NCBI GenBank assembly: GCA_904063045.1
Contig: CAJFCJ010000019.1
Coordinates: 1,751,700-1,815,699, forward strand
Reading direction: 5' to 3'
Origin: Dimorphilus gyrociliatus
Lineage: Eukaryota; Animalia; Annelida
Length of the DNA stretch: 64,000 bases
This document shows, in pieces, positions 18,948-35,150 of this stretch. A model generated the notes under the pieces. That model did not search any database. It saw only the letters and a program-made list of their open reading frames with translations, and had not been told where the DNA came from. Position 1 is the stretch's first letter; every line of letters starts with the position of its first letter. The position numbers and the translations under genes were made by a program.

Positions 18948-20183
18948 AGAAATGTCGAAATCAAATGAAGAAGGTAGTTTAAGAACGTTCAATATATACT
19001 TTCGTATTTTCTATTTAACAGATTTACCGCCTATTCAATTCATTTAGTATTGGTATTTCTGTGTAAATACCGACGAATTTTTATTCTACGATCTTGGTTA
19101 CGTATGACAATCACGTTTGCTTGTTTTTTTTATATAAATTTATATGATCTATTTGTAACTATGACATAAAATATTCTGTGAAAGGCTGCAACTCTAATAG
19201 CCTCTTTTAAATAATAAGTTCATTTAGAAGACAAAAAATGATATATTATTAAGGAGAAAGAGTCATCCTAATTTCTAGTTCGCTATATTGTATATCATAG
19301 ATAAAATTTCTGCAATTTGTATATATTAGCAGTATTTCTTTTTTTACGATGGCCCTTATGGACATTTAGCTTTTATTCAACAATAGCATTATCATAGACA
19401 TTAGAAATTCTGATGATTACTCTTTCCCATACTAATCTATTATTGCTGCAAGTTTCATTTAATATCGCTATTAAGTAAGACAGTTTTACATATATGAAAT
19501 ATGGAATAAAAGCTAAAAAGCTAGTTTAATATTCCTTTTGTCTAACTGACACTTAGTCATGACTGAGCTAAATTGTTGTTGATGATCGTAAACTCAACAT
19601 TGAAGCATTCAATATCGCCAATAGGTCTGATGCTTTTATGCTATTGTAACAAGTAGACCTAGAAAAAAAAATATGTTGTTGTATATTTGATCATCAAAAT
19701 TTAATTTAGTAATAGATAACATTCTGATATAATCATGATTCAATGAATGCTTAATTCATGCAACTTGGGTAATCACTGAAGCGCTGTTTTAATAATAGCC
19801 CCGAGCTATAGACAGTATATTTATAAATGATAGTCATTAGTGTTGACACCTTTTCCTAAACTTCCACTCATACAGTCAGCTCGTTGACTAATGCTAATTA
19901 ATTGCAAAACCAATTAGCTAGTAAAGTTATAAATTGGCATTTGTTATAAATTTATACCGTTAGGAGCATAACTAAAGATTCTTATTTTCTGATTCACCAC
20001 TACAGGAATCTTTTTGTTTTATCGGTTATCTAATAGATAGTGATGTGATATTTTTTACATTATTATCAGTACTTTGACAGAAAATGATTGATAATTGAAT
20101 GTCTGTTCTTCAATGTATTGAATAATATTTTCCTCAAGACATAAAATTCATAAAAGCAAAAATTTTAGTGTTGTAGCTTTGCT

Positions 20184-22693
20184 TTATTTGCCATCAGCAA
20201 CAGCTTGAAGAAATTCAACAACGGTTCTCGTTGGTCTACCGGCCATTCCTTTAGTTAAATACGAAACTTCGCCTTTGTTAGACATGACACCAGCAATATC
20301 CATATGCATCCATTGATCATGCTCAACGAATTCCTAAAAATTAAAACAGATTTATTTTATACAGCATGCATTAAAAAAATTGGTTAAAAGGCGACCAAAA
20401 TGGCAAGTGAAATTGACCTTAAGGAAAGCGGCAGCTAAACAAGAGCCACCACCTTTAACACCAGTTGAGATAGTGCTGTTCAATAAGTCAGCCAATTGAC
20501 TGTCTCTCATTGTTTCTGTATAACATTTCCACAACGGCATTCTCCAGACGCGGTCTCCCGTTTGTTTACCCGCCTAAAAATGTTAAAATTAAATTCAAGT
20601 GTCTTATTTTCCAATAGTTAACGGTGACTATGCAGGTAAATCAACGGGGTTCCTTGCCATTTTGAACGACTTTTACCTTTATGATCGGAAAAAGTTGTTT
20701 AATTGCTTTTAACCTTCAAAAATGCAGCTGCCGTGCATGAACCAGCGTTACGGCCAGCTGATCCAATATTGTTTATGTCAGCTAATTGGCAGTCATTTAT
20801 TTGCTTTTTGTAGAGATTGAATAATGGCATACGCCAAACTCTATCTCCCGTTGATTTCCCAGCCTACCATGAATAAGGATTAAGGAGTAAAAAGTGAAAA
20901 ATGAAGCCTGTCTAAGATAGAGTGATCAAAGCTTACCTCATGCATTCTGGTCCATAGTTTATCAGAATTTGTAAACACACCTGCAGCCCCAGCACCCAAA
21001 GCAACCATCATCGCGCCAGTTAAAGTAGCCATATCGATAATTGCCTTTGGTTTAAAGGTCTGAGCATAACATAGGGCATCAGCAAGGACAAGACGCCCTT
21101 CGGCATCTGTATTATCAACTTGAATAGTTTTACCATTCATAGCTGTTACAACATCACCAGGTTTGGTTGCAGATCCCGAAGGCAAGTTTTCACAACAGGG
21201 AGTGAAAACTCTCAAGTTTATAGGGATTTCTAATCTAGCAGCTGCATATGCGCTTGCCAAAACGCATGCTGCACCTCCCATATCAGCTCTCATGGCGTCC
21301 ATGTTCGCAGGAGGTTTCAAGGAAATACCACCGGCATCAAAAGTAATACCCTTTCCGACAAGTGCAATGCATTGATCTCCCTCATTACCGCCTTTGTATT
21401 CAATTTCGACGAATTTTGGAGGTTCAACTGATCCATTGGTAACGCTCAAGTAACTTCCCATTTTATGACTTTCAGCCCATTCCCGATCGTGAACTTGTAC
21501 TTTAACATTCTTCAATTTTCCGATGTGTTCTTTTACCAATTCTCCTATTCTGGTTGGGGTCATTACATTTGCCGGAGTTTCCATCAAGCGACGAGCAAAG
21601 TTTTGAGCTTCAGCCAAAACGGTACCTCTCTTCCAATGACTACAGCTGTTTTCAAGGTAGCATCTTACTTTTGGAGCAGGCTTCTTCTCCGCTTTCAATT
21701 CATCGTAAACATATCTAGTTAAAGTTGAAAGGGGAAAAATACGCGATAGTGAAAAAACTCCTATTAAATATACAGTATATATAAAAACTAACGTGCAAAG
21801 AGTAGCTGCTTCAGCAGCGGCTTGAGCATTCGAGCACGGATCAACTAGAAAAAATCAGTATTAAACAATCACATTACTAAGTAGGTTGAAAAAAATAGTG
21901 AACCTTGAATGTCGTTGAAACCGGCTTCGTTTAGAGATCGAACACCTGTAGCAATGGCTGCTCTAATGTTCTCCTTGCTCTCGTCAACTTCTTCGAGAGG
22001 ATTGTAGCCAGCTCCCTTTTTTCCCAATGAAACAACAGCAATTGCTGGATAATTTTCATGGAGGCCATAGAAAACACGGCTTTTTCCTTTCTTAGAGGCC
22101 AAATTAGATCTTTAAAAAAAATATTGTATAAAAACACCTTTAAACAGCAATGGACTTACTGTTTAACCAGGTTAAGCAATTTCGAAGAAGTTTTATCGTT
22201 TACTTCCTTTGCTGCATCAGTTAAAGGAATTTCATTTTCGGAAGTAGGCTCATAAATACCCAAAACTAATCCTCTCTGTATTGAAAAGAAATGACTAATA
22301 ACCAGAATGTTAGTGTAATAGTGCCACCTTTCGTTTCATATAACAATTGAACATGGTTAAAGCGATGAATACTGTTATAAGTACGTGTCAGCACTACATT
22401 TGTTGAGGAAACTACTACCTCCTAGAATTTGAACACTTGTCCATAGTACAATTATCAATTCGGATAAAGGAACATATCAGTCGACTAAAGATAGGACTAT
22501 CATGAGTCTGCACACGACACATGCAACAACCAAGTTAGTTGTTCTTCAGTTTTATCCGAATGATAACTTGTACAGGACACGTAAGAAAAAACTGACACAT
22601 ATTACTTACGTTAGAAGTCATAGCTACTGAATAGGTTGCGAATGTTCTCGTCAATCTGAAAACCGGGACTAATCGAAAACCGATAAATACCAT
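20184..22693 (-). CDS. LAP3: Cytosol/mitochondrial leucine aminopeptidase (M17) with a duplicated penultimate exon
   Basis: [59 protein letters not shown]; all metal ligands present. Confidence 0.97.
20418..20573 (-). other. LAP3: LAP3 alternative exon B (duplicate, 156 nt, phase 0-0)
   Basis: [52 protein letters not shown], flanked by AG/GT, no stops. Confidence 0.85.
20714..20863 (-). other. LAP3: LAP3 alternative exon A (canonical, 150 nt, phase 0-0)
   Basis: [50 protein letters not shown], flanked by AG/GT. Confidence 0.9.
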
Positions 22694-22856
22694 AGTAAAA
22701 AAAAGGACGGTCAAGGTCGATTCCAGAATATTTTTCTTTTATATTCTAAGAGAATTAGCGATAATGGGAAATAATAGAAAAATTCTTTAAAAGTTGGCTT
22801 CTTAATAAACTTTTGTATAAAAATTACTAGATTAACTTAAATAATAGGAACTGAAT

Positions 22857-25005
22857 ATGAGTGCTAAATCAGCTGGTACCTTAGGGCGTATTTTTGCTCG
22901 TATCCTCCGGTTTATCCAAAATCGATGTATGGAATTATTAAAATTTCTATGGAATATCTTACCGCTACCTCTAAAAAATCGTCTTAAAAAACTGAAACTG
23001 TTATTCAATATATTGTTTTTTAATTCCCAAACGTCATGGTACACTGGACTAACAACCGCAACGGAACCGTGTAATTGGCTATTTAGCAGAGGATTAAAAT
23101 TAGCAGGACCGGTAAGGAAATTTAAAATAAATATTTAGCAAAATTGCAAAGGAAAATGCGATCATTTCCACAGATATTTGTTGTTGTTGTGGTTCTTCTC
23201 GTGACAATTGTACTCGTTGTATTCTTCGTATGCCTTCTTCCACAAAAATTTGAGGAATCACCTGGTTGGGCTTTGTGGCATTTATTCTTAGGTCACTATG
23301 TCACGTTAAATATTGGTTTTAATTACTTTATGGCCTTGAAAACTGATCCTGGAACACCTCCCAATGTAAGTTTGTAATTTAATATAGAAATTTAATGCGT
23401 TTTTTCAACATAGTTTTCTTTAACTCTTCTATTAATCTGCAGAGCGTTCCTGAAGTTGTATCCATATGCAAAAAATGTATTGCACCTAAACCTCCAAGAA
23501 CAGTAAGTTTATTAGGCGTAAAATTATACTTTATAAAATCTTTTAAGATTTTTGCTAATTGTATTAAATTTCAGCATCACTGTGATATCTGCAAAAAATG
23601 TGTATTAAAAATGGATCACCATTGCCGTATCCTTTTTTGATTCAGCATTTTTTTTTAGCTGATTAATTACATTCGTTAGCCTTACTTTTCCTTGATCATA
23701 CATTTTTTTTTCCTAAACAGCTTGGTTAAATAATTGCATAGGTCACTATAATCATCGTTATTTCTTCTTATTCTGCGCCTTTATGTTTCTGGGATGTTGC
23801 TATGTTGTTTTTTGTGCCTACGACTTCTTTCGAGATCATTACTACGGAAATGAGGTAAAAAAAAAACAAATAAAGTTAAACAAAAGCTTTTTACACCTTG
23901 ACTAATAACTCTTATAATTTTGTTATTTATTATTTTTTATCTTGTTTTTTATTAAAAAAAATACTTAACAAAATTTAACTATTTGTTCTTCTTACCTCCT
24001 AACGCCTCTCTTCAGGAATTAGGCGGTATTTTATACGTCATAACGATAATTAAAAGAAAATTAGGGTGGCAGAATGAGGTGAGCTTTAATGCATGACAAA
24101 AAAAAGGCTGCCAAGAAATTAAAAACTAATGTTTAACAAAGAAAAGAAAATTTCATAAGCATGTTTTTTTTTCTTAAAAATTTATTTCAGTGTTAAAATA
24201 TCTTGAAAGTTCTTGTAGATGTATTTGTTATTATGTAACTATATACTATAATATTATTTAACATTTTCCTTAAAAATTATAACTTTAGTTTAATTTTTTC
24301 CTATAAAAATTTATTATGCATTTTTCCTTGGCTTTTCTGTAACGCTGTTCAAACCTTTTTATTTTTTAGAAAGTTTATTCATAAAAACACATATGTTTAA
24401 AAATGGTTTTTTTCATATCTTCCTTACCTTCTTTCAGATGCATTTCCCATCAAGTATTAAAAAGATTTTAATACCTATTGGATTTGTTAGGAAAGCTATT
24501 TGGGGAAGCAATATTGCTGAGAGTCGAATTTTTACCACGAATTTAAAAGAAGGTGAATCTGTGTTATTGGTCAATGTTCCATATAGGGCTGATAAACCCC
24601 TTCTTCATGGATTTATTACATTTGAATTTATGTTATGCAGGTATTTATAAAGGTTTATGATTGATAAATCTCTGTAATTGACCATGATTTAAAAATTTTT
24701 CAAGTGGAGCTGCTTTCGCTATTTTGGGATTGACACTATGGCATGGGTCGTTGATCAGCTTAGCTCAAACAAGTATAGAAGTGCATATCAACGGCAAAGA
24801 ACGTAAGCGGTGTAAAGCTATCGGAAAGGTCTTCCACAACCCATACAATTTCGGATTTGTTCGAAATTGGAAGTTATTTCTTGGTTTATCAAAAGAACGC
24901 TCTTTCTGGAGACATATACTTTTGCCTTCTACTCATAAACCTTTAGAAGATGGCATTACGTGGCAGACGTCTTCCTATACTTTTCACCATCCTTCAAACG
25001 TATGA
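22857..25005 (+). CDS. ZDHHC16: Palmitoyltransferase ZDHHC16
   Basis: SICKKCIAPKPPRT|HHCDICKKCVLKMDHHC|PWLNNCIGHYNHRYF; LWHGSLISLAQTSIEVHIN; NPYNFG. Confidence 0.92.
23627..23720 (+). other. U12-type (minor spliceosome) GT-AG intron
   Basis: Donor GTATCCTTT and branch-like TTCCTTGAT at 23688-23696; removal restores DHHC-P-W. Confidence 0.8.
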
Positions 25006-28400: not shown

Positions 28401-28823
28401 ACTGGCGATGCAGTTTTAGAACTTGCAGCACTGCCTCTAAGATAAGAGAATGATAATTTTAGTATATTAAAAATGTTTTTCTCTCCTTTTCCAATTAATT
28501 TTTATCTTTAACAAAAGAAAAATCATGACTAAATAGAAAATATGAAAAGTTACTGTTGTTGCCAAGCTCCAACAATTTCGGTGATGAATTCATCGTCCTG
28601 TAGATGGCGCTGATGATGATCGATTACTTTTTCCTGTAAGTAATAAATATACACATTTATATATATATATATATACTAATATAAATCTTTATACATATTA
28701 TATACATTTGTATATACACGGTTTATAAATGAGTATCTATAGGAGAAGAGCTTTGTAGAATAGTATATATGTATATTGTATATTTATATAAGTATATATA
28801 TGTAAGGTGTATGCCTGAAGTAT

Positions 28824-28859
<36 letters not shown>

Positions 28860-30732
28860 TACTTCCGTTGCAGCCTATATAATATATGCCTATACATATA
28901 TATATATTTAACGGTAACCTTCATGTAGTTTATATGTATGCTTATAATACAGATATACTCTCTTCGTCTCTATATTATTCATGCTTAGAGTTTTATACAG
29001 CGTGCATAACCTATAAAAGTGGATATAAATTTACATACTAAATATAGTATACGCACTATACATAGATAAATATATATATATTACATCATTCTTACTCGTT
29101 TATACAGTATAGTCTATATCTAATGATTATTTATTCATCATCTAACCTCGTACAACGCCCAGCCTTCTAGAGACTTGAGATTAATCTGTAATTAGACAAA
29201 CTTTACAAACCGCTTTCCTTGCAAAGTTATAATAACAAAACAAACCTTTTCGCGGATTTTTTTAATAGTATTTAGAACCGTATCGGTATAATCTAAAGCC
29301 AAAGCTTTCGTCTTTCCATCGTAAAAATGAACTTTAAGTAGGAGAGGTTGCAAATTTCTAATTGACTATAAAAAATAAGCGGTTATTCAATGATTTATAC
29401 CTTTCGGAACAAACGAAACAAAAAGTTTCAATTCAGACTAATTAATTATTCATTTAATTATCAATTAAATATAGATTTACCTCTACTTCAAGAGTTGACG
29501 GACCTATTGTCCTTTTCGGTCTAATTCTTTCTTTCCCCAAACATCTTTTTATTATTTTTGCGTACTCTCCAATCTTTCCAGGAGCTTTGCAGGCGGCTGA
29601 TACGTAGTTTTTAAGATACTATAAAAAAGAAAGGAAAAAAAAAGTACGATAGCTAAACAAGAGGTAGAGGAGTGGCGGTAGTGGCAGGGATCAGTGGATT
29701 TTAGAGAACCAGAGATGATAAAATTGACTAAACTACTCACCTCTAATAAGGTAGCGCTAGGCCTAAGGACAGATGACGTTATAGCGAATATATCCCACGT
29801 TTTGATTAGGTAGTCATCAATGGGACAGCCATTGGTTTGTCTAGCTAATTGGCAGAATATTTCATCCGTTAATTCATCGTACTTGAAGCATTGTTCAAAA
29901 ATTGAGCGCAGAATGTAATCCTCTTGGTCCGGTCTCGTTTCCCCTCTCACAATTTTGCAGATATCCTATATAGTTATTAGCATTAATACAGCTATTATCA
30001 TAACGATGACCACTATGGTGATGATGGTAATGATTATTACTATTGTTATTATTATTATTATTGTTGTTGTTATTATTATTATTATTATTTCAACGGTAAG
30101 ATCAATGACGTTGCTAATGGAATATATTCGTGTATAATTTATCTACCTTAAACGCCGAGCAAGCTAGATTAATAATTTGTTCGCTCTTAAAGTGGATGAG
30201 AGAAGTACTAATTGTCGCCTGTTTCGTATACCTAACCATATCCCTTATCGCAACGATATCCTGTTAAGACAAAAAGGAAATAAAGTAGAATTTTTATAGA
30301 AATATAAGAGATTACAAGGTTACACAATTGATAAGAATACGAATAATCAGCAGAAATAGAGAGAATTTAAACATAGAATAAAAAAAGAGGGAGAGGGAGG
30401 ATATAAGAATTTCTTTTCTTGTGATGAATAGATGACACCTATTCTATAGATCGTAGGAAAAAAATATTTCTGAAACATGCTAAATCAGCACATAGTGAAA
30501 ACGATCGGATTACGCCTATGGCTGTTGATGACAGGCGTCATATCTACACGTGCACCATATATAATTAGACGTTTATGCTTACGCTTGTTGACTTTCTTCT
30601 TACGGCACTAACTGTCTTCGTTATGGGAGACGAAGAATTTGCTACATGAACGTTAAAAAAACGCTCTGCAAAATCGAGAAAAGTTTTATTGGCTTTCTGA
30701 GACGATGGAACATGGAGGAACGTTGCAGTCAT
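25417..30732 (-). CDS. MyTH4-FERM-MyTH4-FERM protein (unconventional myosin tail-like, no motor seen)
   Basis: MyTH4 motifs LTDEIFCQLARQT and LCNELYLQLIKQT, WTFTKNPLRQSI; FERM motifs IQLAGLHAQVLHGD, QFPLFGS, LRVLQDWPLYGAKLF. Confidence 0.8.
27021..27130. repeat. Intronic GA-rich simple repeat
   Basis: Imperfect (GA)n/(GGGA)n tract. Confidence 0.85.
28828..28857. repeat. (AT)n microsatellite in a low-complexity intron
   Basis: About 15 AT units read directly. Confidence 0.9.
30037..30088. repeat. (ATT/GTT)n trinucleotide repeat
   Basis: Imperfect intronic triplet run. Confidence 0.85.
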
Positions 30733-35070: not shown

Positions 35071-35125
35071 CATTTGTGCTTTTAGTTTTATATATACATA
35101 CATATACATATATATATTATATTAG

Positions 35126-35150
35126 TATATATATATATATATATATATAT
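35126..35150. repeat. (AT)n between the convergent RIOX1 and COP1 ends
   Basis: Read directly. Confidence 0.85.

Follow-up and report, generated by a model that had tools for sequence, protein, structure and literature searches.

A candidate competing-RNA-structure device of ATE1-like build at the two alternative exons of a LAP3-like gene in Dimorphilus gyrociliatus

The LAP3-like locus of Dimorphilus gyrociliatus raises the question of how a transcript that carries two homologous exons comes to retain one of them at a time. The gene, of the M17 leucyl aminopeptidase type, lies on the minus strand of the window (the whole stretch of DNA analysed, 64,000 nucleotides of contig CAJFCJ010000019.1), and its two homologous exons are designated A and B. 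The Peptidase_M17 catalytic domain (Pfam PF00883) was recognised in the upstream 778-nt exon with an E value of 7e-95, and the best named matches were cytosol aminopeptidases of annelids, molluscs and arthropods, with 64-67% identity to this large exon. Best hits in annelids or molluscs, tiny introns and an AT-rich, compact genome would fit a miniature annelid (PMC7854359). By sequence, the gene product can be assigned to the animal M17 leucyl (cytosol) aminopeptidases and is LAP3-like. The exons concerned are the following.

20937-21714, minus strand: upstream constitutive exon, 778 nt, with the bulk of the M17 catalytic domain and the donor GAG/GUAAGC; it is spanned by RNA contigs that continue into A or B.
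20714-20863, minus strand: exon A, 150 nt, phase 0, with the canonical LAP3-type sequence, corresponding to PF00883 positions 224-270 and delimited by RNA joints.
20418-20573, minus strand: exon B, 156 nt, phase 0, a divergent copy, corresponding to PF00883 positions 224-270 and delimited by RNA joints.
20184-20333, minus strand: last coding exon, with the stop codon at 20184-20186, placed by its open reading frame and by joints from A and from B.

The 3' UTR reaches approximately 20088, where a poly(T) loose end was found (RNA run X9). Exons A and B share 60% identity at the protein level and 59% at the DNA level; their synonymous sites are saturated, 20 of the 28 same-amino-acid codons differing between the two, and exon A is 64-76% identical to the same exon in other animals. 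Positions 224-270 of Peptidase_M17 presumably contribute to the substrate pocket of M17 aminopeptidases, and from the position of both exons, the choice between them may yield enzymes that differ in specificity.

Joints in the assembled RNA of four runs connected the upstream exon, exon A and the last exon, or the upstream exon, exon B and the last exon. Neither an A to B joint nor a joint skipping both was listed in the RNA contigs of these runs, from which low-level double inclusion or skipping could escape, since Logan contigs drop rare variants. Depths were 12.5, 658 and 388 for the exon A joints (20862>20936 and 20332>20713) and 6.4, 338 and 154 for the exon B joints (20572>20936 and 20332>20417). 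The ratio A:B was about 2:1 in three runs and about 1.1:1 in run X5, with A as the major form in three of the four, and exon B was present in a third to a half of the transcripts. These data support A and B as true mutually exclusive tandem duplicates. An earlier note on this DNA, made from the letters alone, had proposed a choice between LAP3 exons, and this was borne out, both exons covering the same stretch of PF00883 and being joined in these two ways only.

Several simple causes of exclusivity were rejected. Frame is one of them, both exon lengths being multiples of 3; steric hindrance is another, as the A-B intron (140 nt, against 50-84 nt for the other short introns of the gene) is well over the gene's 50-nt minimum; and incompatible splice-site types are a third, since every intron of the gene is GU-AG. 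Frame and intron length therefore cannot enforce exclusivity. The donors of A and B, AAG/GUUAAA and AAG/GUCAAU, agree with the 9-nt consensus at 5/9 and 6/9 positions, respectively, and four of the five other donors in the gene score 6-7/9, the remaining one, a constitutive donor, scoring 4/9. The donor sequences given earlier were correct; the weakness attributed to both is only relative.

A docking-like element was located in the A-B intron, together with its two potential partners at the exon starts.

20629-20649, minus strand: element I, within the A-B intron, with complementarity to the acceptor end of either exon.
20846-20866, minus strand: selector A, made up of the acceptor UAG and the initial 18 nt of exon A; complementary to element I and paired with it in the minimum-energy fold predicted for nascent transcripts ending before exon B.
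20556-20576, minus strand: selector B, made up of the acceptor UAG and the initial 18 nt of exon B; complementary to element I and paired with it in the predicted minimum-energy fold with pair probabilities of 0.9-1.0.

Of the 18 positions in the core of element I (20649 to 20632, in transcript sense CCCCGUUGAUUUACCUGC), 15 form Watson-Crick pairs with the opening 18 nt of exon A; with the opening 18 nt of exon B there are 14 Watson-Crick pairs and one G-U. Both counts reproduce the 15/18 previously noted for either exon start. In a repeat search the pairing with A grew to 17 of 20 by inclusion of the U and A of the acceptor UAG (20629-20648 with 20847-20866). As isolated duplexes the two are nearly equal in energy (I-A -24.0 and I-B -24.9 kcal/mol). 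Both occupy 20632-20649, and the same nucleotides of element I being used for A or for B, the pairings exclude each other. The loop closed by I-B is 53 nt long and holds the probable branch point and the pyrimidine tract.

The first 18 nt of A and B are identical at 14 positions. The central two bases of element I pair with the UC of A and mismatch the CA of B, and its reverse complement is intermediate between A and B, a copy of neither. Given that A-B synonymous sites are saturated, an unconstrained intronic 18-mer would be unlikely to stay complementary to both exons, unless its origin were recent. Constraint on synonymous sites in the I-paired codons was also considered: shared synonymous sites amounted to 3/5 there versus 5/23 elsewhere, a trend whose excess is not significant (p = 0.12).

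A second pair of elements brackets exon B, and one arm of it overlaps a possible partner of the exon A donor.

20653-20675, minus strand: element II, in the A-B intron; its partner II' follows exon B, and the two form the predicted helix that closes the 301-nt exon B module.
20385-20407, minus strand: element II', in the last intron, beginning at +11 after the exon B donor.
20382-20390, minus strand: alternative partner of the exon A donor, where CUUUUAACC and GGUUAAAAG (20706-20714) can form 9 bp without a mismatch; shares nucleotides with the 3' end of II'.

Elements II and II' form 20 Watson-Crick pairs and one G-U out of 23, with a duplex energy of -28.7 kcal/mol, and the helix can be extended by 3 bp (GAA/UUC) across a one-base bulge. 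It spans 245 nt and brackets exon B at distances of 80 nt and 11 nt. Element II (20675 to 20653) lies 3 nt (GAA) upstream of element I. These values coincide with those first noticed, namely 21/23 pairs, a spacing of 3 nt between II and I, and a start of II' 11 nt past the exon B donor. The donor-A pairing (20382-20390 with 20706-20714) is in the minimum-energy folds predicted for the 671-nt and 603-nt pre-mRNA, and is weak as an isolated duplex (-11.0 kcal/mol).

The pairings are far beyond chance. In shuffles of the introns the observed duplex energy was reached in 1/2000 cases for I-A, 3/2000 for I-B, 0/2000 for both jointly and 10/2000 for II-II'. Among the 23-nt inverted repeats of the 64-kb window, II-II' alone passes a threshold of at least 20 matches and at least 8 G+C with arms at most 400 nt apart, and II-II' and I-A are the only 20-nt inverted repeats with at least 17 matches; block shuffles gave 0 (23-nt class) and 0.12 (20-nt class) such repeats per window. 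Complements in the upstream intron were unremarkable, at -17.0 kcal/mol with the A-B intron and -14.0 kcal/mol with the last intron, both weaker than the shuffle mean of -21.3 obtained for the pair formed by the A-B and last introns.

An origin from a transposon or MITE was rejected, since I and II have no further copies in the 64 kb, and so was an inverted pseudo-exon, because the reverse complement of the A-B intron resembles the exons only over the 17-18 nt of element I. Element II' is not a copy of exon sequence. An Rfam search of the elements returned nothing relevant.

In the predicted minimum-energy and centroid folds, I-B and II-II' occurred together with pair probabilities near 1 and exon B was enclosed by them. 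Fold z-scores were -3.4 (603 nt) and -4.1 (301-nt exon B module). This is the first of the two states postulated in the earlier note, in which II-II' and I-B coexist. In the long folds II-II' is confident for 12 of the 23 pairs only (20396-20407 with 20653-20664, probability about 1); these 12 bp correspond to the 3' part of element II, the 5' part having competing partners in the longer folds. The I-A pairing has an equilibrium probability of about 0, and forcing it costs approximately 18 kcal/mol. It appears in minimum-energy folds only of transcripts that end before the start of exon B, and flips to I-B once that start is present. The second postulated state, I-A, is thus retained for such shorter transcripts and is abandoned as a balanced alternative.

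Additionally, the argument that I-A is pseudoknotted with II-II', and so competes with it, was not compelling, as the loops measure 171 and 221 nt; with loops of this length the I-A/II-II' pseudoknot would be sterically feasible. Because I-A is absent at equilibrium, any switch would be kinetic or protein-assisted, and the one-sided thermodynamics, together with the share of B in the transcripts, imply that use of B needs kinetics, helicases or proteins. The excess of A agrees with a fold that hides B.

On the whole, the observed pairings are real, and the device at this locus is likely to be functional. It is moderately probable that it is a competing-RNA-structure device which picks A or B, built like that of ATE1 within about 480 nt. 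Element I would hold one acceptor at a time, leaving one hidden and the other free, and this single occupancy would prevent transcripts with both exons as well as transcripts with neither. Which exon is chosen would follow from the order of transcription: element I may pair with the acceptor of exon A as soon as it is made, and some 55 nt later, when the acceptor of exon B emerges, the local I-B hairpin would be favoured. Pairing of II with II' would then shut a three-way structure round exon B, looping B out. The equilibrium fold would consequently favour A, the major isoform, and B would be used if I-A persisted, or if the structure of I-B and II-II' were prevented or unwound.

A more far-reaching version can be advanced only tentatively and is, on the whole, doubtful. 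According to it, the approximately 480 nt would be a self-contained kinetic toggle with coding selectors, having converged independently on the ATE1 design in a compact invertebrate genome; II-II' would lock the state with B hidden, and the A:B ratio would depend on how fast transcription and refolding proceed and not on tissue-specific proteins. If working as proposed, the device would represent a second, independently evolved case of the two-module ATE1 design, contained in less than 500 nt versus 30 kb and with its selectors in coding sequence. The whole of it is small enough for one minigene, and the sequence in which its elements are transcribed would make it convenient for studying co-transcriptional folding in exon choice.

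The idea that a single element targeting either exon end was undescribed had to be given up, since human ATE1 has the same two-module layout (PMC7797038). In ATE1, exons 7a and 7b are governed by an element of the middle intron, R3, whose partner is R1 or R4, immediately upstream of 7a or 7b, and which thereby obstructs a single 3' splice site (Kalinina et al. 2021, PMC7797038). The adjacent R2 has its partner, R5, downstream of 7b, and this pairing promotes use of the proximal exon (PMC7797038). The ATE1 pairings were shown by disruptive and compensatory mutations and are conserved across vertebrates (PMC7797038), whereas the LAP3-like device is known from sequence, predicted folds and RNA joints. 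Both genes have two homologous, frame-preserving and mutually exclusive exons, one element between the exons (R3, equivalent to I) complementary to the acceptor side of both (R1 and R4, equivalent to selectors A and B), and a second middle-intron element (R2, equivalent to II) that pairs downstream of the distal exon (R5, equivalent to II').

On the other hand, the ATE1 selectors are intronic and lie at pyrimidine tracts, and those of the LAP3-like gene comprise the acceptor AG region and 17-18 coding nt; the central element is thus of the ATE1 type with its target shifted into the exon. R2 and R5 are about 30 kb apart against 245 nt for II-II', and the LAP3-like device occupies about 480 nt in a gene with introns of 50-140 nt. 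As to the second module, II-II' is present, the predicted folds loop out B, and A is the major form; II-II' may affect the ratio. Of the earlier interpretation as a whole, the duplicated exons, the non-random pairings and the first state stand, the second state does so only in part, and the novelty of the design does not.

Docking and selector systems have been described for Drosophila Dscam exon 6, 14-3-3xi, Mhc and MRP1, along with a bidirectional model for srp (PMC6071210). As in these systems, selectors compete for one docking sequence and only one pairing can form at once; the srp-type model also invokes a pseudoknot that keeps two pairings from forming together. The general features of the class were found here, that is, exclusive homologous exons, a shared docking element beyond chance, and use of the same docking nucleotides. 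The specific arrangement of Dscam exon 6 and 14-3-3xi was not found in the LAP3-like gene, where the docking element lies between the variable exons, the selectors are exonic, and the upstream intron has no notable complement. In those systems the docking site is in a constitutive intron upstream or downstream of the cluster, the selectors are intronic, and an exon is activated by the pairing next to it, either through relief of repression or because splice sites are brought together, with no masking of an acceptor; the LAP3-like docking element is instead predicted to repress the exon that it binds.

[quoted passage not shown] The LAP3-like selectors are, as this model predicts, duplicated copies of one sequence, both complementary to a single partner, but the duplicated arm is coding, not intronic, and the single-exon annelids examined show no ancestral stem. 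The exon duplication is absent from Capitella and Lamellibrachia, each of which carries the exon once only, with matching boundaries, and in neither does the downstream intron hold an unusual complement to the acceptor region (416/500 and 336/500 shuffles were equal or better). An ancestral stem-loop was rejected on these grounds.

A further parallel is exon 6B of chicken beta-tropomyosin, which is said to be repressed by a stem round the exon (reportedly the work of Libri et al. in 1991). There too, a structure of upstream intron and exon sequesters one of two mutually exclusive exons; unlike here, the repression is one-sided and no shared element is able to bind the other exon. The LAP3-like device is a good candidate for a new example of a known mechanism, and not for a new design.

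It is rather unlikely that the structures merely bias the choice, with the I-B hairpin and the II-II' loop-out dampening B, exclusivity coming from trans-acting factors or splice-site competition, and I-A being a by-product of the similar exon starts. Such a reading would explain why I-B and II-II' alone appear at equilibrium, and the 14/18 nt shared by A and B mean that a complement of B also matches A; moreover, the ratio A:B of X5 (about 1.1:1) departs from that of the other three runs (about 2:1), which points to regulation beyond a fixed fold. Yet element I is not tuned to B, as its central bases fit the UC of A and the two duplex energies are so close, and I-A by itself was equalled in only 1/2000 shuffles and is one of the two such repeats in 64 kb. 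An equivalent central element enforces exclusivity in ATE1 (PMC7797038).

Less probable still than a mere bias is an account of the inverted repeats as mutational by-products, produced by template switching or small inverted duplications and having no selected role in splicing. The exon duplication is lineage-specific, Capitella and Lamellibrachia having a single exon, and with just 3 mismatches apiece both repeats could be of fairly recent origin. Against this, two independent repeats 3 nt apart fall exactly at both acceptors and on the flanks of an alternative exon, and none as strong exists elsewhere in the 64 kb. A single copying event would be insufficient, the sense copies of I and II' being 148 nt apart and the antisense ones 3 nt, and the intermediate character of the reverse complement of I shows that it was not copied from either exon. 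At -24 to -29 kcal/mol, stems that cover splice sites would in any case influence splicing regardless of how they arose, and for the functional device favoured here a recent mutational origin, such as template switching, may still apply.

An intronic complement of exonic sequence is also the classic layout of an ADAR substrate, and element I could be an editing-site complementary sequence forming an exon-intron duplex for recoding of the first codons of A or B. The complement is present and the duplexes hold several adenosines; however, no A>G difference (T>C on the plus strand) was listed at either exon start in the four RNA runs, whose contigs hide low-level editing, the three listed differences being elsewhere and of other kinds. 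The duplexes are short (18-20 bp) and broken by mismatches, and II-II' is left unexplained, so that editing is a very improbable explanation. Inverted repeats closely flanking one exon are a known driver of exon circularisation, and II-II' flanks exon B at 80 nt and 11 nt, but promotion of back-splicing of exon B to a 156-nt circular RNA is hardly credible, given that none of the runs gave a backward joint 20418-20573 (contigs, and libraries selected for poly(A), would under-report such joints), that element I is left unexplained, and that exon B is clearly in linear mRNA.

Relatives of the region were sought by protein and metagenome searches. The protein searches (with the 272-aa exon ORF, and with a profile admitting full-length proteins) gave no relative above 74% identity, the closest being transcripts, which have no introns, and the metagenome scan recovered nothing closer than M17 genes with 44-55% protein identity. 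Several sequencing runs share 5-13% of the words of the region, and may come from relatives.

The gene was identified as an M17 leucyl (cytosol) aminopeptidase on the minus strand. The large upstream exon shares 64-67% identity with its best named relatives, the cytosol aminopeptidases of annelids, molluscs and arthropods. The exons concerned are the following:

20937-21714, minus strand: large upstream exon (Pfam Peptidase_M17, E 7e-95)
20714-20863, minus strand: exon A, 150 nt (Pfam Peptidase_M17 positions 224-270)
20418-20573, minus strand: exon B, 156 nt (Pfam Peptidase_M17 positions 224-270)
20184-20333, minus strand: last coding exon (ORF and RNA joints)

Exons A and B thus cover the same part of the profile, both start and end at codon boundaries, and show 60% protein and 59% DNA identity. 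The canonical 'LADxNNIG...CTAAAFL' of other animals is present in exon A and replaced in exon B, whose loop in this stretch of the catalytic domain is two residues longer. Since the region presumably contributes to the substrate pocket, the two isoforms may differ in enzyme specificity. The 5' end of the aminopeptidase gene is separated by about 500 bp from the start of an oppositely oriented DHHC-type palmitoyltransferase-like gene (23144-23640, plus strand; ORFs with 'KCVLKMDHHC'), which illustrates the gene density of the genome.

Exon usage was determined by aligning the assembled contigs of four sequencing runs (X1, X5, X9 and X11) to 19900-23100; two of the runs, labelled 'DNA?', were taken as RNA because spliced joints and a poly(T) end are present. 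X1, X9 and X11 each yielded two contigs, one of 205 nt and one of 211 nt, made up of exon A and exon B, respectively, with about 29 and 26 nt from the exons on either side. Each of A and B is joined to the upstream exon on one side and to the last exon on the other, and the loose ends found in X5, at 20865 and 20575, bear the terminal sequence of the upstream exon. Neither an A-to-B joint nor one skipping both exons was listed among the contigs of the four runs, which drop rare variants, so that double inclusion at a low level is possible. Exons A and B were confirmed as truly mutually exclusive. The A:B depths were about 2:1 in X1, X9 and X11 (12.5:6.4, 658:338 and 388:154) and about 1.1:1 at the downstream joints in X5 (7495 and 6854), an indication that the choice of exon depends on sample or stage. 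X5 (organism B) also contained an unspliced contig spanning the intron between B and the last exon (20306-20445). X1, a coral metatranscriptome, differs from the window at three single bases in the aminopeptidase exons and 3' UTR (20170, 20177 and 21159), which places the species of the window, or one very close to it, in that sample as a separate strain or allele.

The length of either exon is divisible by three; transcripts with both or neither therefore stay in frame and cannot be eliminated by nonsense-mediated decay. Every intron has GU-AG ends. Steric exclusion of A and B is unlikely, since the A-B intron measures 140 nt, against 50, 59, 73, 78, 84 and 334 nt for the other introns of the gene, and has branch-point-like motifs near its 3' end on direct reading. 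Introns this short would by default lead to inclusion of both exons, and hence something must hide one acceptor. An intronic element able to bind either acceptor, one at a time, would hide one of them and would also prevent both from being hidden together.

Element I of the A-B intron (20649..20632) could serve as such. It forms 15 Watson-Crick pairs with the first 18 nt of exon A, and 14 plus one G-U with those of exon B; the I-A pairing reaches 17/20 when the U and A of the acceptor UAG are counted, and by direct reading these also pair in the I-B alignment. Element II (20675..20653), 3 nt from element I, forms 20 Watson-Crick pairs and one G-U over 23 nt with II' (20407..20385), which begins at intron position +11 past the exon B donor, and this helix can be extended by three pairs (GAA/UUC) across a one-base bulge. 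The earlier note's counts, 15/18 for element I with either exon (one G-U with B) and 21/23 for II with its partner, were reproduced together with its spacings of 3 and 11 nt. The central GA of element I pairs with the UC of exon A and not with the CA of exon B, while, at two positions closer to its 3' end, it pairs with the synonymous variants of exon B and not with those of A; element I reads as a compromise between the two exons.

Two further sites involve these elements. The donor-like AAAG/GUAAAAGU (20667-20678, minus strand) overlaps the 5' end of II, 36 nt downstream of the real exon A donor, AAG/GUUAAA, whose match to the consensus it equals or exceeds; no RNA joint uses this site, which pairing of II would mask. 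The exon A donor GGUUAAAAG (20706-20714, minus strand) can pair without mismatch over 9 nt with CUUUUAACC (20382-20390), which overlaps the 3' end of II', and in minimum-energy folds this helix replaces the 5' part of II-II'. Such pairing would leave no more than about 50 nt between the A donor and the final acceptor, and could equally block U1 binding.

A 603-nt stretch of the pre-mRNA folded at -161.1 kcal/mol (z -3.4) and the 301-nt exon B module at -95.9 kcal/mol (z -4.1), the latter with II-II' as closing helix and I-B nested within it. In a 671-nt fold, pair probabilities were 0.9-1.0 for I-B, near 1 for the 3' 12 bp of II-II', with the 5' part of II paired elsewhere, and near 0 for I-A, which costs about 18 kcal/mol to force. 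As isolated duplexes A:I and I:B are balanced (-24.0 and -24.9 kcal/mol; II:II' -28.7 kcal/mol). When the transcript was grown, I-A belonged to the minimum-energy structure with the RNA ending at element I or 29 nt past it, the fold flipped to I-B once the first 18 nt of exon B existed, and II-II' joined once II' existed. Of the two-state switch proposed in the earlier note, the state with II-II' enclosing I-B is thus recovered in the predicted fold; the I-A state would be transient and not an equilibrium partner, because it folds only before the start of exon B exists. That the structures only dampen exon B, exclusivity coming from proteins, is rather unlikely.

The pairings are far beyond chance. 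Among 2000 shuffles of the intron sequences, the observed duplex energy was reached once for I-A, three times for I-B and ten times for II-II', and no single shuffled intron (0/2000) matched both I-A and I-B. At thresholds of 20 or more matches, 8 or more G+C and arms no farther apart than 400 nt, the 64-kb window has a single 23-nt inverted repeat, II-II', and 17 or more matches over 20 nt are reached by just two repeats, II-II' and I-A; 25 composition-preserving shuffles of the window gave means of 0 and 0.12 such repeats, respectively. Any naive inverted-repeat scan of the window is dominated by long (AT)n microsatellite tracts (28635-28925 and 35092-35150), with many overlapping low-complexity palindromes. 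No further copies of element I or II were found in the window, and no Rfam match to them. The elements are not remains of an inverted exon copy, since the A-B intron, when reverse-complemented, is similar to the exons nowhere but in the 17-18 nt of element I, and sequence comparison rejected II' as exon-derived. An origin of the repeats as mutational by-products is distinctly improbable. That element I is an editing complementary sequence is hardly credible, no A-to-G change being seen at the exon starts in the contigs of the four runs, and that II-II' drives circularisation of exon B is even less so, as these contigs hold no back-splice joint.

The homologous exon was located in Capitella teleta (L020:5493-5642, 150 nt) and Lamellibrachia satsuma (L021:16099-16245, 147 nt), and its first and last codons coincide with those of exons A and B, so that what was duplicated is an old and discrete exon. 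Neither locus has a second copy, which indicates a lineage-specific duplication. This duplication is nevertheless old, since 20 of the 28 codons for the same amino acid differ between A and B. Over such a period, an intronic 18-mer free of constraint would be expected to lose its complementarity to at least one of the exons, and that of element I argues for either selection or a more recent origin. The three differences between its reverse complement and exon A all fall at third codon positions, as expected if the exon drifted at synonymous sites only while element I stayed put. Shared synonymous sites numbered 3/5 in the I-paired codons and 5/23 elsewhere, a difference that is not significant (p = 0.12).

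The earlier note had supposed that the compact one-element design might be undescribed; an equivalent layout already exists in human ATE1, with mutually exclusive exons 7a and 7b (PMC7797038). There R3, in the intron between 7a and 7b, is complementary to both R1 and R4, and the partner of R2, which lies in that intron as well, is R5, on the downstream side of 7b; double inclusion increases when R3 is disrupted, and wild-type splicing returns in compensatory triple mutants (PMC7797038). Element I, selectors A and B (the acceptor UAG and first 18 nt of each exon), II and II' map one-to-one onto R3, R1, R4, R2 and R5. The selectors here, however, comprise the acceptor AG region and coding sequence, whereas those of ATE1 are in the pyrimidine tract, and the long-range helix spans 245 nt against 30 kb. 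ATE1 was demonstrated by mutation, while the LAP3-like locus is known from sequence, predicted folds and RNA joints. As a prediction, the structural switch has good support and is a close counterpart of a proven system; the LAP3 pair would be a compact and convergent new example of a known mechanism, and one that is easy to test. In outline it fits the model of Ivanov and Pervouchine, in which tandem exon duplication yields two selectors for one pre-existing partner (PMC6071210); no matching stem was found in the two single-exon annelids examined, Capitella and Lamellibrachia. Unlike the LAP3 layout, systems of the Dscam and 14-3-3xi type have the docking site in a constitutive flanking intron and intronic selectors, and pairing activates the chosen exon.
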